A program made the translations under genes and the position numbers. From Macrostomum lignano (lineage: Eukaryota), in NCBI GenBank assembly GCA_002269645.1, contig NIVC01000422.1, positions 550,219-614,218 of the forward strand: a stretch of 64,000 nt of DNA, read 5' to 3'. The notes beneath the pieces are model-generated. The model made no database searches and was not told the DNA's origin. It worked only from the letters and a program-made list of their open reading frames with translations. Positions 34,537-62,361 of the stretch are shown piece after piece; position 1 is the first letter of the stretch, and each line of letters opens with the position of its first letter.

Positions 34537-35945
34537 ATGGATGATAAAATTCTGTCTTTACAATTGCTTTTCTTATTCGGTAAGTGACTACCACCCTGAC
34601 TTAAAATGGGTTGGTTTGCTCAGTTATTCAATGCATGCTGTGTATTACTGACCGCGCATTGCCCCAACGCAGTTTGCTGCTCTCTCGTGCTTCGAGTACG
34701 AGGCGCCAGTTTGCGGACCTATTCTGTGTGCTCAGAGCAGCAGCTTCACATGCTGGAAGCCGTTCTGAACGCCTACAACAACGTCACGACAACAACCAAG
34801 GCCACTACTGCAATATAGACTGTCTAGCAAAGTGCCAGAGGGTGAGCTGCAGCGCTGCCGTCTCGGTGGAGAGCAATGCCACGTGCGAGATGGTCACCAT
34901 AGCAACCGCCAAGCTGTCAATCTCAGTAGATCAGGTGCAGCAAGTCATCGGATCTCAGGTCGGTGCGAAGGTGTGGAAGGCGGACGACAGCGACTGGCCT
35001 TCGCCTGCAGTGCAGCTTCGGAGTGAGTCATCAATAACATTCTTAGTCCTGTGTGGTTATCATGATTTTGGCTCAGACAGAAATTGCACTCACTCCAGTT
35101 TTGTAACTCGCTGACGCTGCTCCATTGCAGACAGCAGCACAGGCAGAAACGGCTCAATCCAAAGCGTCCTCATCAACACGACCGGCTGCTACCTGATCAG
35201 AGCTGCCGGAGCCAGAGGTGGCGGAAACTTACTGACGAACAAATCCGGAGGACAGGGAGCCCAGGTGAGCGCCAGAGTCAACCTGACAGCCGGCACCCAG
35301 CTGAGCATCGTTGTGGGCCAGATGGGCGGCTCGACCTCATTGGATATCGAAGGAGGCGGCGGAGGCGGCGGCAGCTTTGTGTACCGGACGGGTGACTATC
35401 TGTTGCTGCTGGCTGCCGGCGGAGGCATTTGGATCAGCAGTTCGTTATATTTCACCGTAGGAAAACCGGGAGAGACTGGGAGAAACGGTTCCGACAGCCT
35501 GGGTAGCTACGCCATCTACACGAGATTCGGCGGCACCAACGGTCAGCCGGGCTTCAACAGCCCCGCTGACACCCCAAACAAAAGCAACCACGGCGGCTGC
35601 GGCGCCGGCTGGCTCGGCAGGGCCGTCAGCCCCAGGCGGAGCTCCTCGGACGGAGAGAGAGGCGGCAGTCTGGCCGACGGCTGGGTCGGCGGCAGCGCCG
35701 GAGACGGCAGCGTCTGCCATGGAGGCTTCGGCGGAGGCGGCGGAGGCGGCAGCAGCTCACTGAAAGGCGCCCCTGGAGCCGGCGGCGGCTTCAGCGGCGG
35801 CGGAGCCGGACTGAGCTACGGCCACATCGGCGGCGGTGGCGGCTCCTTCTGCAGGGGCGGCTGCGTGTTCGGCGGCACCTGGACCGGCGACCAGGGCTTC
35901 GTGTCCGTCCTTCTGGAGTCGGCCGCCTGTGACTCGGGCACCTGA
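34537..35945 (+). pseudogene. PAN-like + ALK/LTK-type glycine-rich protein, copy 1 (frameshifted; intron 3 partly deleted)
   Basis: Exons 34537-34579, 34673-35022 (350 nt vs 348 in intact copies, giving TAG at 34816-34818) and 35131-35945. The donor of intron 3 is deleted and the intron tail is read in frame (IWISSSLYFTV). Confidence 0.75.
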
Positions 35946-36679
35946 TGCCACTGCGCTTGTTGAAGTGGGGCTTGGCCAGTAATATTTTAACTTTGACGGT
36001 CACTGTTTAGGATATTCACAACCCTTAATCTGATTAGAACGCTCTTGTATATGTAATCAATATATACATTATGCTGTTGAACCAATAAATCAGTTTCAGT
36101 ACATCAATTCGCAGAACTTTGAATTCAAACATATTTGCAAAATACTACTGCTTGGGATGAGAACATTGTGACTAGTGCTGCACTTCAGAGTTTAGTTGAG
36201 TAGTATGTGTAACTACTCACCAACTTCTCATCACTAGTAGTGTATGCGCATTTTAAAGTGCATAGCTTGAAACCCAAGCGATTTCAAGGCGAATCGTTGT
36301 GACTTTCACTCAAGATTTGTTAGATTTCTAATCAGCTTCGCTTGCATGCTTAAAAACCATTTTGCTGTTTTCTTCCTGAAATCACGTCAAACTGAACTGT
36401 TTTTTAACTGATTCTTGAATCTTTAACTGCCACTGATTTTGCACTCCGACAACTCAAAAGGTTTTCAATTGCGGCTAATTTCAAACTAATATATACTGAA
36501 AGAACTCGTATGTCCCATGCAAGCCGCTCGTCTTTTTTTCCTACCAGAGGATTTCTGGAGGTATTTTTAGACGAGCGGAATAAATTTGTGTGCTCAGCTG
36601 TCTTTTAGTGCCTGCTTTTGGCTTCTAAACGGAAAGCTCTATGAATATCAATCTTCTCTCACTACAAAAATGAACTGCG

Positions 36680-37625
36680 TGTCTGTGTTTCTGTGTGGCT
36701 ATGTGTCTGTGTGTCTGTGTTTCTGTGTTTCTGTGTTTCTGTGTGTCTGTGTGTCTGTGTGTCTGTGTGTCTGTGTGTCTGTGTTTCTGTGTGTCTGTGT
36801 GTCTGTGTTTCTGTGTGTCTGTGTGTCTGTGTGTCTGTGTGTCTGTGTGTCTGTGTGTCTGTGTTTCTGTGTTTCTGTGTGTCTGTGTGTCTGTGGGTCT
36901 GTGTTTCTGTGTGTCTGTGTGTCTGTGTGTCTGTGTGTCTGTGTGTCTGTGTTTCTGTGTTTCTGTGTGTCTGTGTGTCTGTGTCTGTGTTTCTGTGTGT
37001 CTGTGTGTCTGTGTGTCTGTGTGTCTGTGTGTCTGTGTGTCTGTGTTTCTGTGTGTCTGTGTGTCTGTGTTTCTGTGTGTCTGTGTGTCTGTGTTTCTGT
37101 GTGTCTGTGTGTCTGTGTGTCTGTGTGTCTGTGTTTCTGTGTGTCTGTGTGTCTGTGTTTCTGTGTGTCTGTGTGTCTGTGTGTCTGTGTGTCTGTGTGT
37201 CTGTGTGTCTGTGTTTCTGTGTTTCTGTGTGTCTGTGTGTCTGTGGGTCTGTGTTTCTGTGTGTCTGTGTTTCTGTGTGTCTGTGTTTCTGTGTGTCTGT
37301 GTGTCTGTGTTTCTGTGTGTCTGTGTGTCTGTGTGTCTGTGTGTCTGTGTGTCTGTGTGTCTGTGTGTCTGTGTTTCTGTGTGTCTGTGTGTCTGTGTTT
37401 CTGTGTGTCTGTGTGTCTGTGTGTCTGTGTGTCTGTGTGTCTGTGTGTCTGTGTTTCTGTGTTTCTGTGTGTCTGTGTGTCTGTGGGTCTGTGTTTCTGT
37501 GTGTCTGTGTGTCTGTGTGTCTGTGTGTCTGTGTGTCTGTGTGTCTGTGTTTCTGTGTTTCTGTGTGTCTGTGTGTCTGTGTGTCTGTGTGTCTGTGTTT
37601 CTGTGTGTCTGTGTGTCTGTGTGCG
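36680..37625 (+). repeat. (CTGTGTGT)n / (CTGTGTTT) 8-bp satellite
   Basis: Direct reading. Confidence 0.97.
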
Positions 37626-38013
37626 TGGGTGCTACATACAGTACTCGCGCGTAAATTATTGACGCACATCAATGTGCTCAAAAGTCATCGGAATGGGCAG
37701 AATTGGCTCAGCGCTTGTGTGGGAACTACGGCTGCCCTTGGGCAATAATAAAAATTACTGTTTAAGAAACTCCAGCGCTTAATAATCATCGGTAGGTAAA
37801 GCTCCTGAGCGATAAGGGCAGCTTATGTCTGAGATTGGTCGTCCTCTTAGCCGTCCGCTGCTCAGACCTTCTTCCACACCTACTTGTATTAGTCTCTAGA
37901 GTAGCAAACAACTTCTCAGCTTCCAGAGGAAAAGTATATACACTTCTGATATGATAAAATTGATTTGGTATTTCATCACTAAAAAGACAGGTAGAAAAGC
38001 TATCAATCGAGCC

Positions 38014-38425
38014 TTTTATTTGTGTTGGTTTGTGACTGGTCTTGACTAGTCAATAGCCAGTTTTAAAGCCCACTCCTCTGCCCGCCTTGTGTCGCCTTGC
38101 GTACTTTCTCTCTCCTTCTGTTCGCTCTGTGTGGGTGGTGCTTTGGCTCTGCGTGTGTGGGGTGGTGGCCTGGTGGGGTGGGCTTTAGCCTCTGCGCCGT
38201 CGCCCCTTTTATTGGCGTCTCGCTCAGTTGACTCAGCGTTTTTGGCTGCCTGCGTGAGCTCAATTTTTTTTCTTTAAAGTTTTATTTTTCCAATTTTCTT
38301 GCATCGCTGTTTGCTTTCGTAATGCAAAATACACTTTTGATTCGAGCTGTTGCTCTTATGGGGTTGCTTCCGCGCATCCCCTTTCGTGCCAATGCTGCTT
38401 TTGATTCTTCTTTTGGGTTTAAAAA
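38014..38425 (+). mobile_element. Solo copy of the terminal repeat of the 58.7-61.4 kb insertion
   Basis: Reverse-complement homology to 58677-59040. It interrupts the conserved flank motif TTTTATTT^AAGAAGAA upstream of the orphan exon 1. Confidence 0.65.
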
Positions 38426-38462
38426 GAAGAAATGCAAGACATTGAAGACTATCGCTGCAAGC

Positions 38463-38503
38463 ATGACTGATCAAGTTCTGTCTTTACAATTGCTTCTCTT
38501 CAG
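38463..38503 (+). pseudogene. Orphan signal-peptide exon 1 of the glycine-rich gene family
   Basis: ATGACTGATCAAGTTCTGTCTTTACAATTGCTT (MTDQVLSLQLLLF) with the family's upstream flank, but no GTAAG donor and no downstream exons. Confidence 0.6.
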
Positions 38504-39915
38504 TGTGTGGTGCAATGTACATGTAACACTTGTAAGACAGGTATTAGTACAATTTATCACGTAATATTATCAATAATAACTTATTAAATTTAGTATACTT
38601 ATGATTGTAATTTAGCTTATTACTTTTTCCATAGATTATTAAAAGGTAATTACTACAACTTATCAAATATGTACAACAGCTCCCAAAAAGGCGAAAACGG
38701 AAATCTTTTTGAAGTACCCTAAGAGAGAGTCACAGGCATCCAAACCCACGATTTTAAAGACCTTCGAAGTCCTGTGCCTGCTTCAAGGCGTTCTTGGTGA
38801 GGCTAAAATTTGAACAAGTAAGTCGGGCGCCATCTTCATGCTCAAGATTTGAACATGAAATATGACGCCTAAACCTTCAAAAAGTCTGTTTCAAAAGCTA
38901 TAGTGCATTAATTTTTAAACCTTGTTAAAGCTTAAGCCCAAAGCGTATTGTAAGCTAAAACAACTGTCACAGTTCGTTCGTTTTTAATAAATGCATAAAA
39001 GCTTTTTTGGTTTTCAGCCTAGCGCGAAATATTCCAACAACAATGAAACTTATTTCCCACTTCCCATTCATTCTTGGCAGCAGCTCGCTGAAGCAGGGGA
39101 CTTCACACAACTCAAGATTTTTGCCGCACGCCTATGCAAGGTTCAGCATTTTTTTATTCAGCTGGTGTCGAAACCATGCGTGAAACACCCACTATTGAAA
39201 GGTGTTAACTCTTCTAGTTATTGAGTGTGCTAAACTTTTATTCTAAGCCGGCGCCCTCTTTTGCTCTTACTTTTATTCTGCACACTTGAGGCTAATCAAG
39301 AAAATCCTGCCAACAGCGATGACATCCTTCATGCTTATTCATCTGCTTATCCATCTGAATCCATCTGCATTGCCTAGCTTGGTTACTCGAGCACAGGTTC
39401 GTGGCCAAAATTTATTTGGGGTTGTACACGAAATTGTCAGCGGTTGTCGTGCGATTCACAACCAACCACAACAAAGGCCAAATCCCAAGGCACAGAGTGT
39501 GCGTGTAAAGTGCCTGCTCATCAGTAAGCGGAATATGAAGAACTACCCCAGCGCTTTATGCGTGAGACGATGATAATAAAAGTTGAGTCTCCTGCTAATT
39601 GTTATTATTTAAGAAACTCTTGCACCGCAGCGCCCAAGCATTATCGACAGGGCAGCTCATGTCTGGGATTGGCTGCGAACCCGCCTCTGCTCAGACTTCC
39701 TTCCACATCTACTTGATTCAGTCTCTAGCAAGCGTCTCCTCAAAAGCAGCTCCCAAAATAAGGATCAGCGACCGCACTCAACATCCCTACTGCGAGTCTT
39801 AGGATAGTTCATTTAGGATTGAAGTTGAGGAAATACAGTAAAATAACTCTCAAGCCGTTTGTGCCGCAAGAATCACTAGAAATTGCACGTGAACAATCAG
39901 ACTATCGCTGCAAGT

Positions 39916-41411
39916 ATGACTAATAAAATTCTGTCTTTACAATTGCTTTTATTATTCGGTAAGTGACTGCAATCTTGACTTAAAAACCGCTGCTAAAAGT
40001 TATTCAATGCATGCTATTTATTAATGACAACCAATTGCCCCAATGCAGTTTGCTGCTCTCTCGTGCTTCGAGTACAAGGCACCAGTTTGCGGACCTATTC
40101 TGTGTGCTCAGAGCAACAGCTTCACATGCTGGAAGCCGTTCTGAACGCCTACAACAACGTCACGACAACAACCGAGGCCATTGATGCAACCGACTGTCTA
40201 GCAAAGTGCCAGAGGGTGAGCTGCAGCGCTGCTGTCTCGGTGGAGAGCAATGCCACGTGCGAGATGGTCACCATAGCAACCGCCAAGCTGTCAATCTCAG
40301 TAGATCAGGTGCAGCAAGTCATCGGATCTCAGGTCGGTGCGAAGGTGTGGAAGGCGGACGACAGCGACTGGCCTTCGCCTGCAGTGCGGCTTCGGAGTGA
40401 GTCATCAATGCATAGTCTTTGTCGAGGGTGGCTACCATGATTTCGGCACAGACAGAAATTGCACTCACTCCAGTTCTGTAACTCGCTGACGCTGCTCCAT
40501 TGCAGACAGCAGCACAGGTAGAAACGGCTCAATCCAAAGCGTCCTCATCAACACGACCGGCTGCTACCTGATCAAAGCTGCCGGCGCCAGAGGTGGCGGA
40601 AACTTACTGACGAACAAATCCGGAGGCCAGGGAGCCCAGGTGAGCGCCAGAGTCAACCTGACAGCCGGCACCCAGCTGAGCATCGTTGTGGGCCAGATGG
40701 GCGGCTCGACCTCATTGGATTACGAAGGAGGCGGCGGAGGCGGCGGCAGCTTCGTGTACCGGACGGGTGACCATCTGTTGCTGCTGGCTGCCGGCGGAGG
40801 CGGCGGAGCTTGCTTCAAAAGAAATGGTGATCTCATTAACTTTGTTGCTAGAATTGTGAAGTTTCAAAAGCGAAAATTTAACTTGGATAAGCAGTTTGAT
40901 TGATTTCATCGTAGGGCTACCGGGAGGGACTGGGATCAACGGTTCCGACAGTCTGGGTGACTACAAACCAAACGCAGGATTCGGCGGCATCAACGGTCAG
41001 CCAGGCTTCAACAACCCCGCCAATACTCCAAGCGAAAGCAACCACGGCGGCTGCGGCGCCGGCTGGCTCGGCAGGGCCGTCAGCCCCAGGCGGAGCTCCT
41101 TGGACGGAGAGAGAGGCGGCAGTCTGGCCGACGGCTGGGTTGGCGGCAGCGCCGGAGACGACAGCGTCTGTGACGGAGGCTTCGGCGGAGGCGGTGGAGG
41201 CGGCAGCAGGACCAGATCACTGAAAGGCGCCCCTGGAGCCGGCGGCGGCTTCAGCGGTGGCGGAGCCGGACTGGCCCAGGACCACAGCGGCGGTGGCGGC
41301 GGCTCCTTCTGCATTGGCGGCTGCGTGTTCGGCGGCACCTGGACCGGCGACCAGGGCTTCGTGTCCGTCCTGCTGGAGTCGGCCTCAGCCGCCTGCGACT
41401 CGGGCACCTGA
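39916..41411 (+). CDS. Secreted PAN/apple-like + ALK/LTK-type glycine-rich domain protein, copy 2 (intact, 402 aa); exons 39916-39958, 40049-40396, 40506-40826, 40915-41411
   Basis: Signal-like MTNKILSLQLLLLFVCCSLVL, then the PAN-like Cys pattern DCLAKCQRVSCSAAVSVESNATC. The motifs GSIQSVLINTTGCYLIKAAGARGG, GAQVSARVNLTAGTQLSIVVGQMG, GGGGGGGSFVYR..LLLLAAGGGGG, GGCGAGW and GGFGGGGGGG..GAGGGFSGG..GGGGGSF..GDQGFVSV are collinear with the ALK/LTK extracellular glycine-rich domain. Three phase-1 introns; 1209 nt without internal stop. Confidence 0.85.
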
Positions 41412-42430
41412 TGTCACAGAAACCGCTTTTTGAAGTGGGGATTGGCCAGTCGTGTTTTAACTCGATCACTGATTAATACTGCTTATTCCTGTGAACATTG
41501 TCGCTTGTCCTGTGTGAAAAAAGGCTTCGCACAAGGGAGCCGTGGTAGCGATTAGTGGAGTAAATATTTGTGGAACTATCGTTTATAAAAGTAGACAAAA
41601 TGAATCTGAGTTGGCTATTTTTAAATTAATTTAATTCTGCAGTTCTAATTTTCAGTAATAAATTTCTGTTTACAATTTCTCAATTTCCATACGTGCTCCC
41701 AGGTTGGCAATTTGTTTAAAGCATAATTATTAACACAATAATACTGGCAATGCAAGCTTCGTAGGTAGTGTAGGACTTCAGAGTTTGGTAACTCTAAATC
41801 TAACTAAAATACTTAGTAACGTCTCATCACTAGTAGTGTGAGTGGCTTTTAAAGTCCCTAACATAAGACTCAGGCGCTTAACTATTGTGTGGCTTTTTAC
41901 TCAAGACTTGTTATTTTCTATTAATTTAATTATTTTCACGCGAGTAAGCAATTTTTCGTCAATACATTTTTGCTGTTTCTTTCCTTAATCCCTAACTAAA
42001 CAGCTATTTAACTGGTTCTCGAACCTTTCACTGCTACAGACTTGGAACTCAGACAACTCAAACAGTTCTCAATTCCTAATTATTAATAAACACTGAATGC
42101 ACTCGTCTGTCCGAAGCTGCTCGTCTTTTTTCCGGCCAGACAATTTCTGGAGGTTTTTTAGACGAGTGCAAAAGACAATTGTCTGCTTAGCAGTTTTTCA
42201 ATGTCTGCTTTCGGCCCATGCCAAGGCCGCTCGGCTGCAGCTCCCTGCAGTTGCCTTGCTGCACGCATCTGGCATCTGCGCCCTTCCGTACTGCACGCTA
42301 GGGCTCACTGATGGACCACAATTCAGTCAGCAGGATTTAAATTTAAGTTCCAAAAAGTATTTTTATCAGCAGTTGAAAATATAGTCATGAATTCTAATAC
42401 TCGGGTTGCTATCTGCTGTGTCTCAATCTA

Positions 42431-42825
42431 TCTAAAGGGAATTGCCCGTTCGCTACCCTCAATCTTGGGGACGAGCGAAGGATGGCTTCTGCCTTACCGG
42501 CCGAAACGAGTTGAAACCGGGGCGTGAGTTCGCTCCGCGAATCCCGGCACAGTCCTCCCTAATCGCAAATCGAGTTCGTCAGCCAACCACAGAAATCAAC
42601 GTAAAAAGTAGTCCTTGTACCCTTTATCAGGGCGGCGAAAGAAGAAAAGCACCCGCCGCCCTGGCTGACACGAACCACAAGTTTTTTATATTGATGTATT
42701 GTCTGTACGATAAGGGCTTCAGCCTGGAAGGCAGCCGACTTTCTGCTTTTCTTTTTTTCTGATTTTCTCTCTATCGAGCTAAACCTAACTACCGGTTCCC
42801 CAACTCTGCACAATGACTCGCAAAA
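42431..42825 (+). mobile_element. Interspersed repeat family B (SINE-like)
   Basis: Shares the blocks AAACCGG.GCGTGAG..GC..CGCGAATCCCGGCACAGTCC, CCACAGAAAT.AACGTAAAAA, GACGATAAGG and ATGACTCGC with 47745-48120. A deleted copy occupies the paralogous site at 55312-55440. Confidence 0.6.
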
Positions 42826-43419: not shown

Positions 43420-44516
43420 GAGGAGGCACCGAGGCCTCCTTCAATCAAATGGTGATCTCAGTGGCAGCAGTTGCTTGAATTGTAAATTATGAAAATCCGC
43501 AACCACCGAGTAAGCAGATTGATGATGGGGGGCCGTAGCCCAGCGGTAGCGCAGCTGCTCTGGTGTGCCAGCGACCCAGGCTCGATTCCAAGTGCAGTCA
43601 CATTAATTTGGGGCTGAACTGGAATCTCGGCTTGGCTCTGCTCGTGAAATTAACGGCCTTGAGAGCCAACCCCCCAAGGCGCAGTAAAGTGTACATGCCT
43701 AACGATAATATAAAGTTAGGGCCGCTGTACACTCCTGTGTGAGTGTGTGCCTGCGTACGTATCCGCGCGCTTGTATGCCTGCTCAAGGGAGTCGGCGGAA
43801 TGGGCAGTAATGCCTCTCGCCGGTTGTGTGCCTATGTCGCTTAAAGTGCGCCAGGGTGCACACAACCCCCTGCCTCTAAAAAAAGCAGATTGATGGATTT
43901 CACCGTAGAACAACCGGGTGAGGCTGGAATTGACGGTTTCGACGGACTGGACGGCTACAGCCTCAACGCGGGATTCGGTGGCATCAACGGTCAGCCGGAC
44001 GTCAAAAACCCCACTAACACACCTCCGCTAGCACCACGGCGGCTGCGGAGCCCGCTAACTCGGCAGGGCCGAGTTGCCCCAGGCAGGCTGCTCGGAGAGA
44101 GTAAAAGAGAAGCGGCAGTCGTCTGGCCGATGTCTGGTTCGGCGGCAGCGCCGGAGACGGCAGCGTCTTCGATGGACCCGCGGTGGCTTCAGCGTCGGCG
44201 GAGCCAGACTGGGTCAGGGCCACATTGGCGGCTGCGGCGGTGGCTTCAGCGTCGGCGGGGCCAGACTGGGTCGGGGCCACATTGGCGGCTGCGGCGGTGG
44301 CTTCAGCGTCGGCGGGGCCAGACTGGGTCAGGGCCACATTGGCGGCTGCGGCGGTGGCTTCAGCGTCGGCGGGGCCAGACTGGGTCAGGGCCACATTGGC
44401 GGCTGCGGCGGTTCTGCCGGGGCGGCTGCGTCTTCGGCGGGACCTGGACCGGCGTCCAGGGCTTCGTGTTCGTCCTGCTGGAGTCGGCCTCAGCCACCTG
44501 CGACTTGGACACCTGA
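43420..44516 (+). pseudogene. Glycine-rich gene copy 3: exons 1-3 deleted, SINE in the last intron, frameshifts, internal 57-bp repeat x4
   Basis: The upstream flank ends at ...GACAATCAAACTATC (just before the family ATG) and joins the tail of exon 3. The last exon (from ~43909) is frameshifted and contains four GGFSVGGARLGQGHIGGCG units. Confidence 0.8.
43525..43882 (+). mobile_element. Full-length tRNA-derived SINE (family A) with 13-bp target-site duplication
   Basis: Head GGCCGTAGCCCAGCGGTAGC...GGCTCGATTCC has Pol III A- and B-box-like motifs, followed by an A-rich tail. AAGCAGATTGATG is repeated at 43512-43524 and 43883-43895. Other copies are at 26200 and 17472. Confidence 0.85.
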
Positions 44517-46014: not shown

Positions 46015-46770
46015 ATGAAGCCAAAACGCTCACTGCAGCTGCTGCTCAGTGCAGCCCTCTTCTTCATGCCGATATCGACTCAAAGCCTGTTCCAGACTGT
46101 CAGAACTCGCAGTGCGGTGGCTCCGACAGTCACGGACTCTGCGCCAGGCAGCGTCAGCCTGGAGTGCGCATCGCTCTGCGCCCTGAGACCCGCCTGCTTC
46201 GGCTTCAGCCTGCTGCGGGGCCTCTGCCGCTTCTTCGATCTGTGGGCTTTTGAAAACGGCACTTGGCACAGCTCGAATGAGTGCGACCTGCACATCATGC
46301 TGACTGGTGAGTCCTCACTGCGAACCCGCCCGAGTTTTGGTATGAATCAATAAAATAACTGAAAGGAACTCTGGGACATAGCAGACAAAGCCAAGCTGAG
46401 ATTCATCAGCTGCCAGCAGAGCTCGGTTGAATACGGCTCAGTGTGCGGGAAGGCCATCGATGGAGTCAAAAATCAGAACTCAGGATTTTGTAGTCATACG
46501 GCTAATAGAGCAAAGGGCTGGTGGGAAGGCCAGCTGGCCAGACCTGCCTTCATCTCGCACGTCACCATCTACAACAGAGTTGATTGCTGCATAAACCGCC
46601 TCAACAAGCTGTCGCTGATTGCTGACGGTGTCGAGTGCAACCGGGTGGACCTGACGGTGCCGTTCTCTGTGGTCAGCTTCACCTGCAAGGCTTTTGGCAG
46701 CAAAGTCAGAATTGTCAACCTGCAGGAAAAACCTATGAACCTGTGTGAAGTCGAGATCTACGGGCGTTGA
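46015..46770 (+). CDS. Secreted PAN/apple-like + F-type (fucose-binding) lectin domain protein, ~226 aa; exons 46015-46306, 46382-46770
   Basis: Signal peptide MKPKRSLQLLLSAALFF and PAN-like LECASLCALRPACFGFSLLRGLC. A phase-1 intron (G|gtgagt...catag|CA) is followed by the F-type lectin domain QSS..KAIDG..CSHT..WW..VTIYNRVDCCINRL..NLCEVEIYG. The fucose motif H-X26-R-X-D-X4-R is exact when counted. Confidence 0.88.
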
Positions 46771-47391: not shown

Positions 47392-47642
47392 CGTCTGGAA
47401 AACGAAGCTGCCGCCACCGCCGCCTCCTTCCAAATCCAAGGAGGTCGAGCCGCCCATCCGTCCAACAACGGTGTTCAGCTGTGCACCGGCTGTCAGGCAG
47501 ACTCCGGATGTGCAAGTCAGTAAGTTTCTGCCTACTTTTGCGCTGGCATCTTTGATCAGGTAGCAGCCGGTCATGCTGATGACGACGCTTTGGATTGAGC
47601 CGTTTCTACCTGTGCTGCTGTCTGCAATGGAGCAGCATCAGC
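47392..47642 (-). pseudogene. Inverted orphan fragment of glycine-rich gene exon 3
   Basis: The reverse complement reads ctccattgcag|ACAGCAGCACAGGTAGAAACGGCTCAATCC...GGAGGCGGCGGTGGCGGCAGCTTCG with an internal deletion. No other exons are nearby on this strand. Confidence 0.85.
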
Positions 47643-47744
47643 CGGTTGTGCAATTAACTATCTGTGCCAAAATATCCCAGCTTTACTGAGTAGCTGCTCA
47701 AGCCCACAATGCACGGCTACATCATAGCAAGCATATTCCAGCAA

Positions 47745-50590: not shown

Positions 50591-51700
50591 AAATCACAGA
50601 CCGATTAAACTCCGCAACTCAACAAAATACCAGAAGCAGTTGGAGTTGCTTCTGGGAAAAATTCGGCGGCTCCAGGTGATGTTTTAATGGTAAGTCAGAA
50701 AGATTATTTTGTGCCAGCAATTGCACTGCGCCTCTTCATGTGACTTATTTGATTATTTGATTTGATTAAGATTCAAAATCTACGCCAAGTCCTGCAAAAA
50801 AGTATTGTACTCGTATCTTTCCGAAACCTAAATCGATATTTAGCTTCGGTAAAATATCGATTCTGACCGAGGAGGGCAGTAGTGATGGCGCTGGTCTATC
50901 GGTATTTCCTTTCCTCACTCTCCATGCACGCGGCGGATGAAGCAAGAATCACACAGTGCGAGGAGGGTGGGTGAGTTTAACAAAAGGAGCAGGAACAAAA
51001 GGCATATTCGGTCAAAAGATTGAATGCTGATTTTATTTTTAAAACTTGCCTGTGGTTTTTTAGCGTATTATCCACCGTGTCTTGCTGGGTTTTCAATGCA
51101 GTGAAGTCAAGAATGCCCAACAGGTGCAGAGTGCAGATCTAGAGCGTATGTAAAAAAAAATCGTCCTGCTACCGGATAACATCGAATTTAAAAAGTGAGA
51201 AAATTGTGTTAGCTCCGGTCTCTTATCTTTTCCTCTCTCCTCATGGGTTCAGGCAAGACCACAGCGCAGGACGGGCTCTGGAAATTTTTTCGGCAGCTTC
51301 CGCAGCTACCAAACGAAACAGTCCTTTGTAAAACTGCGGAGGTCCACAGGTTGGATGAAAAAATCGATATTGTTCGTCTCCGGTGTAGCATCGACTTTTT
51401 TCAGAGCAGGGATCACATGCTTTTTTGTTTTTTTCACTCGTTTTAGCCGGAAGCCAACGCGGAAGGCTACAACTACCCAGCTTATGCAGCTCACGTTTCC
51501 GTAGTGTGCTGAGAGTACGCTCACCACATCACTGACATCTTTACATTCTTGCAACATTGTGCCGTTTACCCAACCTACTCGTACCTGTAGCTACCTATAG
51601 TTTCTCCCCACGATTGCCTTCAACCATCCTGAATGCTGTTATAAGCCCAAACGTCTAGACACTATTTACGCGGTATAACTAGTCTCGGTTCGTTTTAACA

Positions 51701-51768: not shown

Positions 51769-53005
51769 GCCAATGTTGGTAGTCAGAGAGAGATCTTTCA
51801 AGTCGTGGGACCCTACAGTAACTGCTTGGCAATTCCAGCAAACTTATAGTAGCTGTGAAACCAATAATTATAACTCATTAATTAATAATCCTTAATTATT
51901 ATTCAATATAGTACCCATGCAACCAGTTGGATTTAAGTGCCTGATAAACATTCGAAACTTTCATTTCTACTTGGTGCCAGAACTACTTGTACATTTGTGA
52001 ATCCTTGGGAAACAACTGGAAACATTTTTTGTAAATAATTTTTAAGAGGGTCCATGCTCTGACGGTTGAAAGCTGATGGAATCTATAGTTTTTGAGTAGC
52101 AAAATAATTGTTTGAAAGAATGCGAATTCAAACCGGATAATTGGAGGAATAAACAAGAAGAGAGTAAAGAAAGTAAAAAGAAATCGTTTTTGGGAGATGC
52201 ACACTCTTCTAGATGTGGTAAATTTCATCTCAAGTCGACAGACACATGTCTTGTACTTTTAGTCGTTACAGTTGAAGCTAATCCCAAAAATTATTGCCAA
52301 CAGCGAGGATGCCTGTTTTCTAATATATTTGTTGCTATCTGAAATGATATCTACTGCAAGTGCAACTGCTAGGATAAAGTATATTCGATTCGAAATTAAC
52401 AAAACGCTGATACGAGCTAACATATGTGTAGATTTTTTCAGCAAGTAGAAAAAAAAGTTTCGAATTGTGAGGCAGCTCTGTCCTTGGTTTAAGAAAGTTC
52501 TAAGCAGAAGCACAGGAGAAAACGCTTCTGGCTCTGGTGCAACGAACCCACCACGAATCCTGATTTGATTCCCGCATTAATTTGGTGTTGGACACGAAAA
52601 TTATCTGGCGATTCTGCGTGTGCCACAGGCGACCTTCTTGAACTTATACGCTCGTAATTCTTATTATTCAGGAAACTCCAATAGAATCATCGATAGATAG
52701 ATCGATAGTTCCTGAGCCATGAGGACAGCTCAAGTCTGGGATTGGCTGCGAACCCGCCTCTGCTCAGACTTTCTTCCATATCTATGTGATTTAGTCTCTA
52801 GCAAGCGTCTTCTCAGAAGCAGCTCCCAGAAAACAAGTAGCAGCAACCGCAACCTGCTTCCCGCCTGCAAGTCTATAAAAAACTGAGAGTAACTATTTTG
52901 GAATTTCAGTAGTCAAAGGCCAAGTTAAATAGCTATTTATCAGCCTCCCTTGTTCACGAAGAATACAAAAAATTGAAGGCCGACAATCAAGCTACTCCTG
53001 GAAGC

Positions 53006-54515
53006 ATGAATGATAAAGTTCTGTCTTTACAATTACTTTGCTTATTCGGTAAGTGACTGCAATCTTGACTTAAAAACCTATGCTCACAGTTATTCAATGC
53101 ATGCTGTTCATTACTGACCGCGCATTGCTCCAATGCAGTTTGCTGCTCACTCGTGCTTCGAGTACAAGGCACCAGTTTGCGGACCTATTCTGTGTGCTCA
53201 GAGCAGCAGCTTCACATGCTGGAAGCCGTTCTGAACGCCTACAACAACGTCACGACAACAACCAAGGCCACTGATGCAACCGACTGTCTAGCAAAGTGCC
53301 AGAGGGTGAGCTGCAGCGCTGCCGTCTCGGTGGAGAGCAATGCCACGTGCGAGATGGTCACCATAACAACCACCAAGCTGTCAATCTCACTAAATCAGGT
53401 GCAGCAAGTCATCAGATCTCAGGTCGGTGCGAAGGTGTGGAAGGCGGACGACAGCGACTGGCCTTCGCCTGCAGTGCAGTTTCGGAGTGAGTCATCAATG
53501 CATAGTCTTAGTCGTGCGTGGCTACCATGATTTCGGCACAGACAGAAATTGCACTCACTCCAGTTTTGTAACTCGCTAACGCCGTTCCATTGCAGACAGC
53601 AGCACAGGTAGAAACGGCTCAATCCAAAGCGTCCTCATCAACACGACCGGCTGCTACCTGATCAAAGCTGCCGGAGCCAGAGGTGGCGACAACTTACTGA
53701 CGAACAAAGCCGGAGGCCAGGGAGCCCAGGTGAGCGCCAGAGTCAACCTGACAGCCGGCACACAGCTGAGCATCGTTGTGGGTCAGATGGGCGGCTCGAC
53801 CTCGTTGGATATCGAAGGAGGCGGCGGAGGGGGCGGCAGCTTTGTGTACCGGACGGTCGACCAGCTGCTGCTGCTGGCTGCCGGCGGAGGCGGCGGAGCA
53901 TCAACCGGTGAAAATGGTGAGCTTAGTAGCTGCAGTAGGTAGATTCTACAATATACGAAACAAAAACCGGCATTAGATTACATAGATTACATCGGCAGTT
54001 TGATTGATTTAAATGTAGGACAGCCGGGAGAGACTTGGATAAACGGTTCTGACAGCATCGGAGCAAACAGCGCATACACGGGATTCGGCGGCAGCAACGG
54101 TCAGCCGGGCTACAACAATCCCGCTGACACCCCAAGCGATAGAACCCATGGAGGCTGCGGCGCCGGCTGGCTCGGCAGGGCCGTCAGCCCTAGGCGGAGC
54201 TCCTTGGACGGAGAGAGAGGCGGCAGTCTGGCCGACGGCTGGGTCGGCGGCAGCGCCGGAGACGGCAGCGTCTGCGACGGAGGCTTCGGCGGAGGCGGTG
54301 GAGGCGGCCACAGGACCGGCTCACTGAAAGGCGCCCCTGGAGCCGGCGGCGGCTTCAGCGGCGGCGGAGCCGGACTGAGCCACGGCCACATCGGCGGCGG
54401 CGGCGGCTCCTTCTGTAGTGGCGGCTGCGTGTTCGGCGGCACCTGGATCGGGGACCAGGGCTTCGTGTCTGTCATACTGGAGTCGGCCTCAGCCGCCTGC
54501 GACTTGGGAGCCTGA
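53006..54515 (+). CDS. Secreted PAN/apple-like + ALK/LTK-type glycine-rich domain protein, copy 5 (intact, 402 aa); exons 53006-53048, 53139-53486, 53596-53916, 54019-54515
   Basis: Same exon lengths (43/348/321/497) and phase-1 introns as copy 2, open frame throughout, starts MNDKVLSLQLLCLF. Confidence 0.85.
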
Positions 54516-55311
54516 TGGCACTGCAACCGCTTGTTGAGGTGGGGTTTAACTAGTCGAGTTTTGGCTTGGATGGTCACCGATTAACACCGCTTAGTCTTCT
54601 GAACCTTGACGCCTGCCTTCTGGGACAAGAAGTCGTGATAGTGATTAGGGGAGCATAACACGTAAATGGATTAAAGTTGCTAACAATATAAAAGGGTAGG
54701 ATAATAGAGTAAGCTTAAAGATTGATCAGTTCGCAGTTTCATATTCATCATTTTCGCAGTTCTTTCTGTTAAACCGATGAATTCTATCCATTTCTCAATT
54801 CCAACACCTGAAATCGACGAATCGTTTCGAGCTCTGTTTCGAGACTTGTTTGCACTATACTACTGGCGATAAGAACATTGTAAGTAGTGTAGCACTTTTT
54901 CCTGTTTCCCTCCTAAACTTTTCGAACTAAACTGCCTTGAAATTTTTTTTTAATTTTTCACTGCTACTGAATTTGCACTCAGACAACTCAAACAGTTCTC
55001 AATTCCCAATTATTAATAAATACTGAATGCACTAGTCTCTCCGTAGCCGCTCGTCTTTTTTCCTGCCAGAGAATTTCTGGAGGTTTTTTTAGACGGGCGA
55101 AAAATGTTTGTGAGTTCAGCTGTCTTTCAGTGTCTGTTTTCGGCTCATGCCAAGGCCGCTCGGCTGCAACTCCAGGGCTCATTGGAATTGCATGCTTGAA
55201 ACTTGTTAAGTAGAACGCAAAACTTGTAAACGATAGCTTTCCTTACAAGTTAAACGTTTTGCCTTGAAGGCGAATCCTTGGGTTTCCATGTGCTGTGTCT
55301 GAGACATCTAC

Positions 55312-55440
55312 CTAGAGCGATTTCCCCGTTCACTACCCTAATCTGGGCGGCGAACGATGGAAGGCTTCTACTGACCCGGCTGAAACGAATCACCAGTGTC
55401 ATCTATACTGATGGAGCGCCTGGACGATAAGGGCCATACC
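55312..55440 (+). mobile_element. Internally deleted family B copy
   Basis: CCCGTTCACTACCCT...GGC.GAAACGA...GCCTGGACGATAAGGG, in the same flank position as 42431. Confidence 0.5.
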
Positions 55441-56048
55441 TTGTCATTTTTTCGGGTGCTCAAGTATATCTTCCAGTCCGTTTTGCATCATCGTCACGTG
55501 CTTTTCGCAGCAAGCGAAATCTGCTGCCTTCTGCTCGCTATACACATTTGAGATTGATGTGTGGCTTAAGCGTGCCTACACGCAGGTGTCTACACGCAGA
55601 AGATCGTCGTGCTCTGCGTGCGGGACGACATCGAGGCTGCCATTTTGTGCCAAGGCGCAGATGGACAGGCAACGGAGCTTCCAGTTTGCAGTTGTTTTAA
55701 CAAGTTTCCATTATCGACAGCGCGAGCCTGAGAACAAATCCTGAGAATCAAGTAGAAGTCAACGCTTAGAATGTTAATCAGGCACTTTAAACCCAATGGT
55801 GTCAAAGGTGTAATGGAGTAATAATTGAGGATTATGACAGCTACTATTATAACTTTGTTGCAATCAGAGAAAATCTGTACTCTATACATAAAAAGTCTTT
55901 TTACCGGTGTACAAATTTGATCGCTATGGACTCCTAAACCTGTCAACCAAAAAGCAAAAATATATTTGCACCCATCCTAAACTTACTACGGAAAAGTCTT
56001 TGGCTATTTTTTTAATTTCCTAAAGGCAAGTAATTCAAGTCAGTGTTA

Positions 56049-56258
56049 CTACAGTGCCCATCTACTAATTCTCGCCGAGGTGCCAGCGAGAGTGCTGCAA
56101 CCATACAGCCGGAGCAGCGGCTGATGTTCAGTGTGGAACTCGAACGTCCGATTCTGAAGGTAGTGCTTTAGGCGAGACACAGCGCAAACAATGGCTATGG
56201 CTTCTCTTTCAATATTGGAATGATTTTCCTCTGCCTCTGCCCTGCTTTGTCCTGGCAC
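56049..56258 (-). mobile_element. Ty3/Gypsy RNase H remnant
   Basis: NHSNIEREAIAIVCAVSRLKHYLQNRTFEFHTEHQPLL...SARISRWAL matches the Gypsy pol RNase H pattern NYS.IE.E.LAI..A...F..YL.G..F...TDH.PL...RI.RW.L. Confidence 0.8.
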
Positions 56259-57586
56259 CGAAGTCTTGCAACGAGAACTGATTCTGTACCTGAACGCCTT
56301 CGCAGTTCATATTATTATGATCATCAACATTTAAAATAATGAGAATGAGCAAATGAGAAACTTTCTGACCGAATTATAAATGGGGTAGATCGATTTTTAA
56401 ATGAATCATACGAGCATAGAGATCTGAGGCAGGTTGAACTGCTTGTAATCTATCAGCGTCTGACGCAACTGACTCGGCTGTAGTACTGCAAGTTTCCAGT
56501 TACTGTTGGAGTACGCTACTCTCATTCTGAATGAGTATCGCTGCAAACCGGATGCAAACTCACAGACCGGTTAAATACCTTCTCAAACCAAGCAAACAAC
56601 CAGAAATAATTGGAGTTGGAGTCGCTTCTGCAGAAAATGCTGCGGCTCTGGGTGATGTGTCAATGGTATTTCTTTTGTGCCAGCAATTACCACAACGCAT
56701 CTTTATGCGACTCGGGGGATTAAGCTTCAAATTCTGCGCCAAATCCTGAAAATATAGTTTCGTAGCTTTCGGAAACTCAAGTCGGTATTATTTTGCTATT
56801 ATTGACTGGAATTTTAGGGCTGGTCTACCGATATTTCATTGCCCCTCTTCTCATTGACGCAAGAATCACATCGCGAGGGGGACGGGTGAGTTTAACAGAA
56901 GGAGCAGGAACAAAGGAATATGTGCACAAAAAATAAATGCTGATTCTATTATTAAAACTGGCGTATGGTTTTTGCGTCCTATCCACCGTGTCCGGGCGTC
57001 AATGGAGTAAGACAAGTAAGCCCAAAAGCCCAAAAACCTAAATCTCGGAGCTTATATGAAAAAAATCAATATCATACTGCTGCGGTACACCATCGAATTA
57101 AAAAAAGCAAGACACTTGTGTTACGCCGGTCCCTTTACTTCCGTCTCCACAGAAAGACAGCGCGAGACGGGCTCTAGCAATTTTTTCGGCAGCTTCCGCA
57201 ACTACCAAACCCCTTATGCTGCCGTTTGTGAAACAATGCGGAGGTCCAAAGCTTGGATGCAAAAAATGATATCAATTTTCTCAGAGCAGGAGCCCATTTT
57301 ATTTGTTTTTTCTTCAGTTTTTTTTCACAACAGCCAGGCCGGAAGCCAACGTGGAAGCCCTCAGCACCAAGATTATGGATAGTGGCGTAGCTCACGCTGT
57401 CCGCGTGTGCTGATGATGCGCTCACCGCACCACTGACATTTTAAAATTTGATCAGCATTGTTCTGTTTGACGTTTCCTACCCCTGGCTATTCATTCAACC
57501 TCACAGTTTTATTCAACCATGCTGAATGCCGTTTCCACATCAATATACTGACACTATTTAATACGAATTGTCTCAGTTCGTTTCAA

Positions 57587-57661
57587 TTGTTTAATCAATC
57601 ATTGCAGAATAAACCTGATGATGCACCTTAGTGTGCGAAACGCGTCGAAAATTGTAAACAA
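57587..57661 (+). ncRNA. Minimal type I hammerhead ribozyme-like motif
   Basis: C-CTGATGA-T-GCAC[CTTAGT]GTGC-GAAAC-GC-GTC|G: conserved core, 4-bp helix II, palindromic mini helix III and a GUC triplet. Helix I proximal to the core is poor. Confidence 0.55.
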
Positions 57662-57677
57662 ATTTGATACTTTGAGG

Positions 57678-57685
57678 AGAGAGAA

Positions 57686-57770
<85 letters not shown>

Positions 57771-57772
57771 GA
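57678..57772 (+). repeat. (GA)n microsatellite
   Basis: Direct reading. Confidence 0.98.
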
Positions 57773-58164
57773 GTAATTGCCACACCGCTTTCTGTGTAAT
57801 GCAACGACAACTCTCCTGCAATTATGATTATTATTTAAGAAGCTCCTGCAGAGCAGCACCCAAAAGCCATCGATAGACAAAGCTCCTGAGCCATGAGGAC
57901 AGCTCAAGTCTGGGATTGGCTGCGAACACGCCTCTGCTCAGACTTACTTCCACATCTACTTGATTTAGTCTCTAGCAAGCGTCTTCTCACAAGCAGCTCT
58001 CAAAAACAAATAGCACCAACCCCACTCTGCTTCCCGCCTGCGAGTATATAAGCAACGGATATATGAGTAATTGATTCGCGACTTTAGTAGTCAAAATTAG
58101 CTACCTCTCAAGCCTTCTGCTCAAGAAGAATCGCAAGAAATCGAATGCCGACAATCAAGAGAGC

Positions 58165-61100
58165 ATGACTGATAAAATTTTGTCTTTACAATTACTTTTC
58201 TTATTCGGTAAGTGACTCCCTTCCTGACTCAAAACCGCTGCTCACAGTTTTCAATGCATGCTGTTCATTACTGACCGCTCATTGCCCCAACGCAGTTTGC
58301 TGCTCTCTCGTGCTTCGAGTACAAGGCACCACCAGTTTGCGGACCTATTCTGTGTGCTCAGAGCAGCAGCTTCACATGCTGGAAGCCGTTCTGAAGGCCT
58401 ACAACAACGTCACGACAACAACCAAGGCCACTGATGCAACCGACTGTCTGGCAAAGTGCCAGAGGGTAAGCTGCAGCGCTGCCGTCTCGGTGGAGAGCAA
58501 TGCCACGTGCGAGATGGTCACCATAACAACCGCCAAGCTGTCAATCTCACAAATCAGGTGCAGCAAGTCATCGGATCTCAGGTCGGTGCGAAGGTGTGGA
58601 AGGCGGACGACAGCGACTGGCCTTCGCCTGCAGTGCATCTTCGGAGTGAGTCAGCAATTCATAGTCGTGGGTGGTTTTAAATCTAGAGAAGATACAAGAG
58701 CAGCAATGGCACGTAAAAGCAAAAGTTCGAAATCAAAGTGTAGTTGGCAAAACCAATTAAATTGGTGATGCAAAAAAGAACTTTAGAGAAAAAACATTGA
58801 GCTGTCGCAGGCAGCCAAAACCGCTGAGTAGACGGAGCAAGACGCAAATATAAGGGCGACGGCGCCCAACCCCACCGGGTCACCACCCCATGCACGCAGA
58901 GCCGAGTAACGCCCTCCCCCCCTCTACAGCGCGGGCAGAGAGAGAAAGGACGCACGCAAGGCGACATAGGCAGGGCAGAGTAGTGTTGCCTAAAACTGGT
59001 TAGTAACAAGTCAGAAGCAGTCACAGACCAACGCATTAAACCTAAAGAAGATCAACAGCAGCATTGCCACGAACGGAGATGCGCGGTAGCAACCTGATTC
59101 TAATCAGGTGCTGCCAGTCTCATCTTCCTCTTTGATCTGGAACTCAACCAGCTGTCTTTCTGTCCTCACAAAGAGCGGATTCGTAGTTGCTGACTTCGGC
59201 GACTGATTGAGCTGGCTTTTTGACGATGAAGAATTCATGACGCAGGCTAGTATATTGAAACTATGGTGAGACACCGGGTGAAAAATCGACCCAGTGTCTG
59301 AATTGGTGGCTTTGCCTGGCGGCTTGGCGGGCGGGTTAGATTTTGTGAGTAGTTTAAGAGTGGTGATTAGTTAATCAAAAACTCCCACTTCCAGACCGCA
59401 AGTCTGGGAACAGAATTTAGTGATCACTCACTATTGCGGGCTCTTCAGTTGTCAGACAGATCCATAGAGCTTGTCTTCTCAATGTAGTCTTCCTACGGAG
59501 TTTCTTGGATTCTGAAGTCGGCCGAGTATGAGAGCACTTTAGTGAACGTAACACTTCAATCTGTCGACGTCAATGTATTCTTCGAAATTAGTAATCAAAA
59601 TCAGAGATGAGCCCTATTAGCAAAGTAAACCAGTAACAATAACGAGGTCCTCTGAGAGGGCGTCTTCTGAGGGAGAATCAGAGTCTTGTGCCCCTATCTG
59701 TTACTCTAGGGTACCAAAATCAATCAATCGATAATTGTCTAAGAGTATCGGAATCGGTCCGCAGATCTTATCCAATCCCTTAGAAATAGGGAGGCCTCAA
59801 AGTCAACAACTCTATAGAAATCAACTGATCAGTACGGCCGGCGGTAACAAAGCTCTCAGTAATCAAATAACAAAGACTCCAACAAAGACTTACCGAACGA
59901 TATCTACTTCTCTCAGAGATGTAGCCTCGTAGTTCTTGGTTGTTCTCAAGTCCTCTTGAGGCTGCTCCGAGTCTAAGATTCCATCTCGGATTTTTTGCTT
60001 GTATTTATAAGCAATTTTTGCGAGATATGAATAATACGAGTAGCATGATTCATCTTTTTCATTATAAATGATAACATTATCCATTTCTCCATTTAATTAG
60101 TAACATGATTAACAGTTTAAGTTTTGCTGTGCGTGTTTGCATTAGTCTACTTACAGTAACATTCTATGAATGGATAAACCTCTACATTTGTCAGTAGTTA
60201 GGGCGCCATCAGACGTGACTGTATAGAGTATGAGGAAGGAGGCGAGACGGGATAGAATGAAGCAGTATGCGAGACAGCAGGCAAAGCTGAAGGCGAGGCA
60301 GAGGGTGAGGCAACGTCGATCAGCTTTTTGGGCCCGCGCCTTTGGTGTGCTGATGGACAAAACTCACAAATCCGGCAGGCGTAAGAAAAATTGCAAGGCT
60401 GCCCCGGACCTCCCTGGTTGCGGTTGAAAAAGGCGCAAATCGTCTGGCCCCATTATATTGTTATTAGACGTTGCTACTGGAAGACTTCTTGCTGCTTCTT
60501 CTTTGAAGGTTCGGCGCTGCCGTCATGTGCTTGATACATGGATTATACGAGTAAGATTGAGGTCTGGGCTGTCTGAGTCTCTTTGTAGCTCGTACAGTAA
60601 CAGACATATGTCCTCATCAGATCAAAGGACGATATTCTAATGGTTGTTTGCTGCTATGAGCTGGCGGATATTTATGTTGAAATTGGGGTAAGCCTTCAAG
60701 CGACACACGTCAATACTTCAATCGCTTTCTTTAGAGACGAGCTGGTTGGGGCCTATCAGCTGCAGCATTATTCTGGAGTTTGCAGCGATCCAATGCGAGA
60801 TGAGCCGGCCGCATCTTCGCTGAAAGCAGACCAAAAAGTGTTAAAATCGGGTTAAACTCTACAGCTGTGGCACTTGCAGCTCGATCCACCATCCAGTTTT
60901 CTGAATCTCGCTAATAAGTCTGGGCGATGTTGTCGGGTTGAATATCTCGGATTCTTCCTCGTTCAGCAGCTGATTTATCGCTGCTCTTCTGTTGTGTCTC
61001 CTTCTGCAGCATTTCAAGCCGTTCAATAAGCTCTTGTATACTCGTATTTACCGAAGCCGGCAGGCCATTGTCTCTCAGAGCCGTGAGAACTTGGGCCATT

Positions 61101-62361
61101 TTTAACCGGTCGATATCAGATATGACGGCAAATCGAAAATTTACAGCTAAAGTTTTGAGCTCATACAGACATCCCAAAGCACTGAGTAAACATAGCGAGA
61201 TGCAAATACAAGACGCCGAGGCTAAAGCCCGCCCCCACCAGGCCACCACTCAAGGCACACAGAGCCAAGCAGTCCATACAGCGTGGACAAGTGGAAGAGA
61301 GAACGCATGCAGGGCGACACTGGCAGGCCGAAGATTGGATTCAAAACTGGATAGTCACAGGTTAGAACCAGTCACAAACCAACGCAACTACGATTCTGGC
61401 ACAGACAAAAATTGCACTCACTCCAGTTCTGTAACTCGCTGACGCTGCTCCGTTGCAGACAGCAGCACAGGTAGAAACGGCTCAATCCAAAGCGTCCTCA
61501 TCAACACGACCGGCTGCTACCTGATCAAAGCTGCCGGCGCCAGAGGTGGCCACAACTTACTGAGGAGCACATCTGGAGGCCAGGGAGCCCAGGTGAGCGC
61601 CAGAGTCAACCTGACAGCCGCACACAGCTGAGCATCGTTGTGGGTCAGATGGGCGGCTCGACCTCCTTGGATTTAGAAGGAGGCGGTGGAGGGGGCGGCA
61701 GCTTTGTGTACCGGACGGTCGACCAGCTGCTGCTGCTTGCTGCCGGCGGAGGCGGCGGAGCTTCCTTTAGTAGAAACGGTGAGCTCAGTGGCTGCATTTT
61801 GCTAAAAATATGTAAATTATGAACCGAAAAGCCACTGATAAGCAGCTTGCTTGATTATACCGTAGGACAACAGGGAGAGACTGGGATAAACGGTTCTGAC
61901 AGTCTTGGTGCCGGCACTACCCTGGCTGGATTCGGCGGCACCAACGGTAATCGGGCTCCAACAGCCCCTCTGGAACCCCAAGCCATAGCAACCACGGTGG
62001 CTGCGGCGCCGGCTGGCTCGGCAGGGCCGTCAGCCCCAGGAGGAGCTCCTCGGACGGAGAGAGAGGCGGCAGTCTGGCTGACGGCTGGGTCGGCGGCAGC
62101 GCCGGAGATGGCAGCGTCTGCGACGGAGGCTTCGGCGGAGGCGGCGGATGCGGCAGCAGGACCAGCCCACTTAATGGAACGGCTGGAGGTGGTGGCGGCT
62201 TCAGCGGTGGCGGAGCCGGACTGGGCTTCGGCCACAGCGGCGGCGGCGGCGGCTCCTTCTGTAGTGGCGGCTGCGTGTTCGGCGGCACCTGGACCGGCGA
62301 CCAGGGCTTCGTGTCCGTCCTGCTGGAGTCGGACTCAGCCACCTGCAACTTGGACACCTGA
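58165..62361 (+). pseudogene. Glycine-rich gene copy 6: exons 58165-58207, 58296-58645, 61459-61778, 61866-62361; three 1-bp deletions; 2.7-kb insertion in intron 2
   Basis: All four exons and splice sites are recognisable. There are -1 frameshifts near 58550, 61620 and 61947, and intron 2 homology is split at ~58677/61390. It may be an intact gene with assembly errors. Confidence 0.7.
58677..61390 (-). mobile_element. ~2.7-kb degenerate insertion with partial direct terminal repeats
   Basis: Splits intron 2 of copy 6. Segments ~58810-59035 and ~61145-61390 are diverged direct repeats, both ending AGTCACA.ACCAACGCA. A decayed minus-strand ORF begins near 61100. Family not established. Confidence 0.55.

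Follow-up and report, generated by a model that had tools for sequence, protein, structure and literature searches.

A 64,000-nucleotide stretch of the genome of the flatworm Macrostomum lignano (contig NIVC01000422.1 of assembly GCA_002269645.1, positions 550,219 to 614,218; hereafter the window) contains a cluster of genes and gene remnants coding for proteins in which a signal peptide and an N-terminal module of the PAN/apple type precede a glycine-rich domain (GRD) related to that of the receptor kinases ALK and LTK. An initial annotation, made from the nucleotide sequence, placed a tandem family of such genes between coordinates 34537 and 62361, and both limits hold: the first corresponds to the ATG of copy 1 and the second to the stop of the last copy. 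A tblastn comparison of the assembled protein with the window maps seven pieces between these coordinates, and this map together with the alignments between copies bears out the description of the locus as a tandem family (Table 1).

Organization of the PAN-GRD gene cluster

Two of the genes, copies 2 and 5, are intact and code for proteins of 402 amino acids, in agreement with the initial annotation. Both are spliced, with four exons each (39916-39958, 40049-40396, 40506-40826 and 40915-41411 in copy 2; 53006-53048, 53139-53486, 53596-53916 and 54019-54515 in copy 5), separated by GT-AG introns of approximately 90-110 nt, those of copy 5 being 90, 109 and 102 nt long. Both proteins end with GDQGFVSV[LI]LESASAACD... 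and then a TGA, such that translation stops 15-17 residues after GDQGFVSV. Candidate poly(A) signals are located 140-250 nt downstream of each stop. The homology between copies does not extend further than about 100 bp past the stop codon, and the upstream flanks can be aligned at 75-81% only.

Five damaged copies or fragments had been proposed in addition to the intact genes, but the last two of these, at 58165-58653 and 61458-62361, represent the halves of a single gene, and the cluster is thus composed of two intact genes and four damaged loci. The split gene, copy 6/7, is collinear with the copy 5 region on both sides of an insertion in intron 2, with 57869-58666 corresponding to 52693-53507 and 61394-62474 to 53532-54628. 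Both ends of the insertion match a related solo copy at 38017-38289 on the opposite strand (74-76%), and although its open reading frames lack any Pfam domain it looks like an element of the LTR (long terminal repeat) or TRIM (terminal-repeat retrotransposon in miniature) type. Copy 6/7 lacks a single nucleotide at each of three places, near 58551, 61620 and 61949. The last exon of this gene (61954-62358) is 100% identical to residues 285-419 of the predicted UniProt protein A0A1I8HRN4, whose gene model reads through the deletion positions in exons 3 and 4 (two of the three), and these deletions may therefore be indels introduced by assembly or may differ from one assembly to another.

The first 32 residues of A0A1I8HRN4 correspond, with 100% identity, to a segment at 51253-51348 that is 1.7 kb upstream of copy 5, and a diverged version of the same segment is present upstream of copy 6/7 at 57158-57319. 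The segment at 51253-51348 is outside the 402-amino-acid reading frame and may be either a 5' exon or a gene-prediction artefact.

In copy 1, the reading frame of exon 2 is broken by a 2-bp insertion near 34813, and a deletion of about 70 nt, which took away the terminal part of exon 3 along with the bulk of intron 3, has joined exons 3 and 4 in frame. The remaining two damaged loci each retain a single exon. Exons 1-3 were looked for in the vicinity of the last-exon relic and none was seen; within this relic a 57-nt unit is present 4.1 times with 98% identity (44180-44412), multiplying one of the poly-Gly motifs (GGGFSVGGARLGQGHIGGCG). The other locus is a lone relic of exon 3 in the opposite orientation. 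No GRD exons were found in the window beyond the mapped pieces, and the intergenic open reading frames have no Pfam domain.

Table 1. Features of the window, with those of the PAN-GRD cluster first and the upstream genes last.
Feature	Coordinates	Strand	Basis or remark
Copy 1, PAN-like/GRD pseudogene	34537..35945	+	~93% alignment to copies 2 and 5
Copy 2, intact 402-aa gene (signal peptide, PAN-like module, GRD)	39916..41411	+	spliced reading frame
Last-exon relic (GRD C-terminal) with internal tandem repeat	43885..44516	+	tblastn matches in three frames
Neighbour gene, secreted PAN-like plus F5/8 type C (fucolectin-type) protein, 225 aa	46015..46770	+	two exons
Lone diverged exon-3 relic (GRD N-terminal half)	47392..47628	-	tblastn, 65% identity to residues 129-217
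Copy 5, intact 402-aa gene	53006..54515	+	spliced reading frame
Copy 6/7, single gene interrupted in intron 2, with three 1-nt deletions compared with copy 5	58165..62361	+	collinear with copy 5
Insertion in intron 2 of copy 6/7, 2.7 kb, ~260-bp terminal direct repeats	58667..61393		repeat match
Mosaic divergent segment	40915-41050 (copy 2), 54019-54150 (copy 5), plus intron 3 of each
Sec16	~4999-5337 and neighbouring exons
XRCC1	17717-23699		large tandem array inside, 20156-22130
GHMP-kinase (galactokinase-like) gene	28472-29900

The two intact copies share 87.6% amino acid identity with a ratio of nonsynonymous to synonymous divergence (dN/dS) of 0.49. Synonymous divergence (dS) is 0.14 overall and is distributed as a mosaic, being 0.03 in the PAN-like module, 0.11-0.14 in most of the GRD, and 0.76 at residues 238-282. 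Intron 3, which adjoins the divergent segment, is 60% identical between the intact copies, whereas introns 1 and 2 are 87-94% identical. This uneven divergence suggests that gene conversion has homogenised most of the coding sequence and stops at residues 238-282 and intron 3; the genes are thus presumably old tandem duplicates in which the coding parts have been kept alike, with the exception of a single segment that has remained diverse. Close paralogues vary most at residues 233-236 and 252-258, both near the beginning of exon 4.

Domains of the encoded proteins

The C-terminal ~270 residues were initially assigned to the TNF-like/glycine-rich (TG) domain of ALK and LTK, and they are a genuine homologue of it by profile comparison with the PDB and by Foldseek, such that we regard the homology as secure. 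The spliced product of copy 2 matches the Pfam family PF12810 (ALK_LTK_GRD) with an E-value of 4.5e-4 and 20.7 bits, below the cut-off of 24.5, and the single-exon open reading frames have no GRD match in Pfam. The cut-off is passed by more distant M. lignano paralogues (P0013 with 26.8 bits, P0043 with 29.5 bits), and the close paralogues P0003-P0005 carry precomputed PF12810 assignments. In the PDB, the spliced protein finds LTK with E 0.044 using phmmer, and a profile built from 59 family sequences matches ALK-family chains only, including SCD-2 (E 4.3e-9) and human ALK (E 5e-8).

Structural comparisons were made with the AlphaFold2 model of A0A1I8HRN4, which is 86% identical to copy 2 and also contains the last exon of copy 6/7. 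The predicted local distance difference test (pLDDT) score of this model is 85-96 over most of the GRD, which is modelled with a TNF-like beta-sandwich and a polyglycine-II lattice. The first 21 Foldseek matches in the PDB are all TG/GRD structures of ALK or LTK (E 2.7e-11 to 2.7e-6), followed by a match with E 0.2, and the highest target-normalised template modelling score is 0.64, to LTK (7NX1). Both intact proteins contain the poly-Gly series GGGGGGGSFVY, AAGGGGGA, GGFGGGGGGG, GAGGGFSGGGAG and GGGGGSFC, and these motifs are near-invariant among 60 homologues. The window proteins therefore have the fold and the run of poly-Gly motifs in common with the TG supradomain of ALK and LTK (7NX1, 7LRZ, 7NWZ, 7LIR), with 18-28% identity in the Foldseek alignments, but they differ in having neither EGF-like module, transmembrane helix nor kinase, and in having a PAN-like module ahead of the GRD where ALK and LTK have MAM/LDLa.

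The assignment of the N-terminal module as PAN/apple-like is less firmly supported than that of the GRD, but the evidence from its Cys core, from Foldseek and from a paralogue is consistent with it. The module has a Cys core of C-x3-C-x4-C-x11-C that is common to M. lignano paralogues and to coral PAN domains, and its predicted structure is a helix followed by a beta-hairpin. The top Foldseek matches, none of which has E<0.001, are all of the PAN type and include the Sarcocystis apple lectin SML-2 (E 0.055, probability 0.96), the HGF N domain and plasminogen. A search of 10 family N-terminal modules against Pfam gave one match to PAN_1 (PF00024), with E 0.035, and a profile of the module has no match in the PDB. 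Paralogue P0134, by contrast with the sub-threshold window copies, passes the PAN_1 cut-off (23.5 bits versus 21.4) and aligns to copy 2 with its Cys residues conserved (pairwise E 3e-5), which supports the PAN assignment of the window copies by transitivity. UniProt names A0A1I8HRN4 (P0001) an 'Apple domain-containing protein'. The module thus appears to resemble PAN/apple lectins and the N domains of HGF and plasminogen in Cys core and in helix and beta-hairpin, although it has diverged from them.

The sole hydrophobic stretch of the intact proteins is the N-terminal MTNKILSLQLLLLFVCCSLVLRVQG, a signal peptide; past residue 30 there is no further hydrophobic span, the Kyte-Doolittle maximum over 19 residues being 0.95-1.16. 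Each protein has 7-8 N-x-S/T sequons for N-glycosylation (8 in copy 2), and Gly makes up 29% of the GRD. A six-Cys EGF pattern is not present in any frame downstream of 33000, and none of the kinase motifs HRDLAARN, DFG-type or SDVWSFG was found in the six frames of the 64-kb window, although the last copy could have exons beyond it. A regular-expression scan for kinase signatures returned only three short chance matches (to a loose G-loop and VAIK), two of them within tandem repeats. The initial claim that these genes have no transmembrane span, EGF-like repeat or kinase exon accordingly holds within the window by all three kinds of scan, and the PAN-GRD proteins are predicted to be secreted and soluble.

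Relatives and genomic neighbours

M. lignano has many paralogues of these proteins, with N-terminal partners that include WSC and Apple domains by UniProt name and F5/8C-FTP by both name and Pfam. Many of the paralogue gene models are truncated or chimeric. Two candidates for kinase-bearing relatives were discarded: P0134, annotated as a 2348-residue 'receptor protein-tyrosine kinase', is not an ALK but a chimeric model that joins GRD genes to IFT140, and P0016, a 'Protein kinase domain-containing' protein, has no Pfam kinase match. UniProt's automatic name 'receptor protein-tyrosine kinase' is carried by several kinase-free M. lignano proteins and by many phage proteins; it appears to follow from the GRD alone and represents a systematic mis-annotation.

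Outside the flatworms the closest relatives are cnidarian. Proteins of Porites, Stylophora and Pocillopora have precomputed matches to both PF00024 and PF12810 (E ~1e-23 to 1e-26), and cnidarian GRDs are about 40-50% identical to that of copy 2 (44-47% in a MAFFT alignment). Several of the kinase-free cnidarian proteins have a PAN domain upstream of a C-terminal GRD of high similarity, with no transmembrane span or kinase; most of the group begin with a hydrophobic N-terminus, have a PAN or PAN-like module before the terminal GRD, and end right after it. They differ from the window proteins in often having an EGF or other module between PAN and GRD, and their PAN domains are much less diverged than the flatworm module. 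For the Nematostella 'loricrin isoform X2' (XP_048576998), Pfam detects EGF and GRD, and a PAN-like Cys motif was recognised by eye. In a jellyfish protein, six EGF repeats and a C-type lectin domain occur together with a GRD that is detected by the family profile and not by Pfam. Elsewhere, the domains that accompany the GRD are PAN, EGF, C-type lectin and F5/8C according to Pfam, and WSC according to UniProt names.

When 1.84 billion cluster representatives were scanned, 4013 matched at E<=1e-3. Many of these are giant multi-GRD proteins, among them a choanoflagellate protein and another encoded in a bacterial metagenome-assembled genome. ENA contigs also yielded homologues of ~300 residues, which are probably eukaryotic rather than bacterial: a LINE reverse transcriptase and an animal-type helix-turn-helix gene are present on the one contig that was inspected.

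The GRD fold is also widespread in predicted proteins of phages and giant viruses. In BFVD, 70 predicted viral proteins reach E<=1e-3 against the model, the best with 1.6e-16, and a large number of these are virion or tail proteins of phages. The cyanophage Pam3 tail-fibre protein gp24 is reported to be structurally similar to C. elegans ALK (PMC9608196). The structures of the tail-fibre proteins Pam3 gp24 and S16 gp38 have been solved, and in both the glycine-rich domain functions in recognising the host (PMC9608196). Phage adhesins such as Salmonella phage S16 gp38 and Pam3 gp24 (PDB 7YFW) have the same kind of polyglycine-II lattice as the window proteins and employ it for recognition outside the cell, but they have no PAN module, and gp24 is part of the virion, a trimer assembled with a chaperone (PMC9608196). 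The direct Foldseek match to Pam3 in the PDB is weak (E 0.58), and the relationship to phage adhesins may be very ancient or partly convergent.

Between the two single-exon GRD relics is a gene for a 225-residue protein (exons 46015-46306 and 46385-46770, with a GT-AG intron). Its F5/8 type C domain matches PF22633 (F5_F8_type_C_2, E 1.7e-8) and is of the NedA/fucolectin type, and it has a Cys core of C-x3-C-x5-C-x10-C. A paralogue of this protein is fused to a GRD gene in the UniProt model A0A1I8HRC7 (P0132), and so the adjacency of GRD and PAN-F5/8C genes may recur elsewhere in the M. lignano genome.

The upstream part of the window (1-34000) contains unrelated genes coding for Sec16, XRCC1 and a galactokinase-like GHMP-kinase. 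This part also has many long minisatellite arrays, such as those at 5471-6792, 10306-11053, 14308-15313, 16444-17471, 26811-28408 and 31800-33087. An (CTGTGTGT)n microsatellite of ~950 bp follows copy 1 (36675-37623), and a 19-nt satellite of approximately 50 copies follows the last copy (63006-63934).

Candidate roles of the PAN-GRD proteins

What these proteins do is inferred here from sequence, and we put at about even chances the reading that they are soluble extracellular recognition or adhesion proteins that combine a PAN module with a rigid GRD scaffold and owe the specificity of each paralogue to variable patches. On this proposal, N-glycosylated PAN-GRD proteins of a family expanded in the M. 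lignano lineage would be secreted, and the GRD scaffold, the PAN module, or both would bind an extracellular glycan or protein target, with the hypervariable patches at residues 233-236 and 252-258 conferring a specificity of its own on each paralogue. The cluster would have grown by tandem duplication; gene conversion would keep the greater part of the coding region uniform and leave intron 3 and the variable segment with their older divergence, and copies would decay through indels, deletion and the insertion of a repeat-flanked element. The presence of a PAN and F5/8C gene inside the cluster and the lectin-type partners of the GRD elsewhere support a role in recognition or adhesion. Pattern-recognition or adhesive proteins were an alternative in the initial annotation, and this is the better-supported of its suggestions.

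Several observations weigh against this proposal. The dN/dS ratio in the variable segment is 0.26 and gives no sign of positive selection, which we considered and regard as unsupported, and the segment may be diverse only because it is old and was left out of gene conversion. The evidence for the fold comes from the model of A0A1I8HRN4 and not of copy 2. For the N-terminal module, the window copies match PAN_1 at a sub-threshold E of 0.18, hhalign against coral PAN gives E 0.11, and the pLDDT of the module in the model is 65. An exact look-up of both 402-residue proteins in a collection of 15 billion proteins gave no match. Finally, a role as a structural component of a secretion would suit a folded Gly-rich domain just as well.

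That last idea, in which the GRD is a polyglycine-II building block of mucus, adhesive-gland glue, rhabdites, eggshell or seminal material and the PAN module cross-links glycans, is a possible but doubtful alternative. The signal peptide, the heavy glycosylation potential and a GRD with 29% Gly are in keeping with it, as are tandem multi-copy genes, which suit high-output secretory products, and the RefSeq name 'loricrin-like' given to cnidarian relatives. However, the domain is a compact fold and not a low-complexity repeat, patches that are hypervariable and specific to paralogues fit recognition better than bulk material, and no proteomic or in situ evidence was found in the literature searched. 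It is considerably less probable that the locus is a decaying array with no current role, its two open copies being recent duplicates that have yet to be disabled. Four of the six loci are damaged, a repeat-flanked element has inserted, and the region is repeat-rich, but the intact copies keep their splice sites, stop position and Cys pattern at a dS of 0.14 and dN/dS of 0.49, the model of A0A1I8HRN4 reads through two of the three deletions in copy 6/7, which are possibly assembly indels or assembly differences, and the architecture is conserved from cnidarians to the flatworm.

The initial annotation favoured soluble decoys or modulators of ALK signalling. On this reading the free GRD would capture the flatworm's ALK ligand, one like Jeb, HEN-1 or ALKAL, or pair with the receptor ectodomain. 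The GRD is indeed the ligand-binding module of ALK and LTK, the fold match is specific, and the proteins appear to be soluble. A decoy would, however, be expected to originate from the receptor, and the window GRDs, at 18-28% identity to ALK and LTK, are far closer to the kinase-free cnidarian proteins (about 40-50%); the family also has many members and is found fused to modules of the lectin type. Given that the domain falls together with non-receptor GRDs, a role in ALK signalling is not supported, and we consider it very unlikely. The closer cnidarian kin, the spread of the domain among phages and giant viruses, and the lectin-type partners argue instead for an extracellular binding module of a generic kind, and not for one derived from the ALK receptor.

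The initial annotation described this architecture as not known to have been characterised as a cluster, and its possible novelty stands in one respect: neither kinase-free GRD proteins of metazoans nor this Macrostomum family are the subject of a study in the literature searched, the function of the cnidarian kinase-free GRD proteins is not described there, and PF12810 is mentioned once, as a domain of unknown function in a fungus. The architecture itself is already on record, with PAN/GRD predictions for M. lignano, Nematostella, Stylophora, Pocillopora and Porites in UniProt and RefSeq, and both the domain family and the proteins of this locus are in Pfam, UniProt (unreviewed) and RefSeq as uncharacterised predictions. 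A more far-reaching idea, which we think unlikely, is that PAN-GRD proteins are an ancient soluble recognition family of cnidarians and bilaterians from which the ligand-binding ectodomain of ALK/LTK was recruited, and that Macrostomum has expanded it into a repertoire diversified at two surface patches for innate immune, microbial, or gamete or partner recognition.

To our knowledge, the only functionally characterised use of the polyglycine-II fold in metazoans is the ligand-binding domain of ALK and LTK, a receptor module relevant to cancer. The existence of a free, apparently secreted GRD that is paired with PAN, is retained in both cnidarians and a flatworm, and has multiplied in tandem in the latter suggests that the fold is a general extracellular binding scaffold, which, if so, is used by both receptors and phage tail fibres. 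M. lignano is an established laboratory flatworm, and its PAN-GRD family provides a way to ask what the GRD binds outside ALK.

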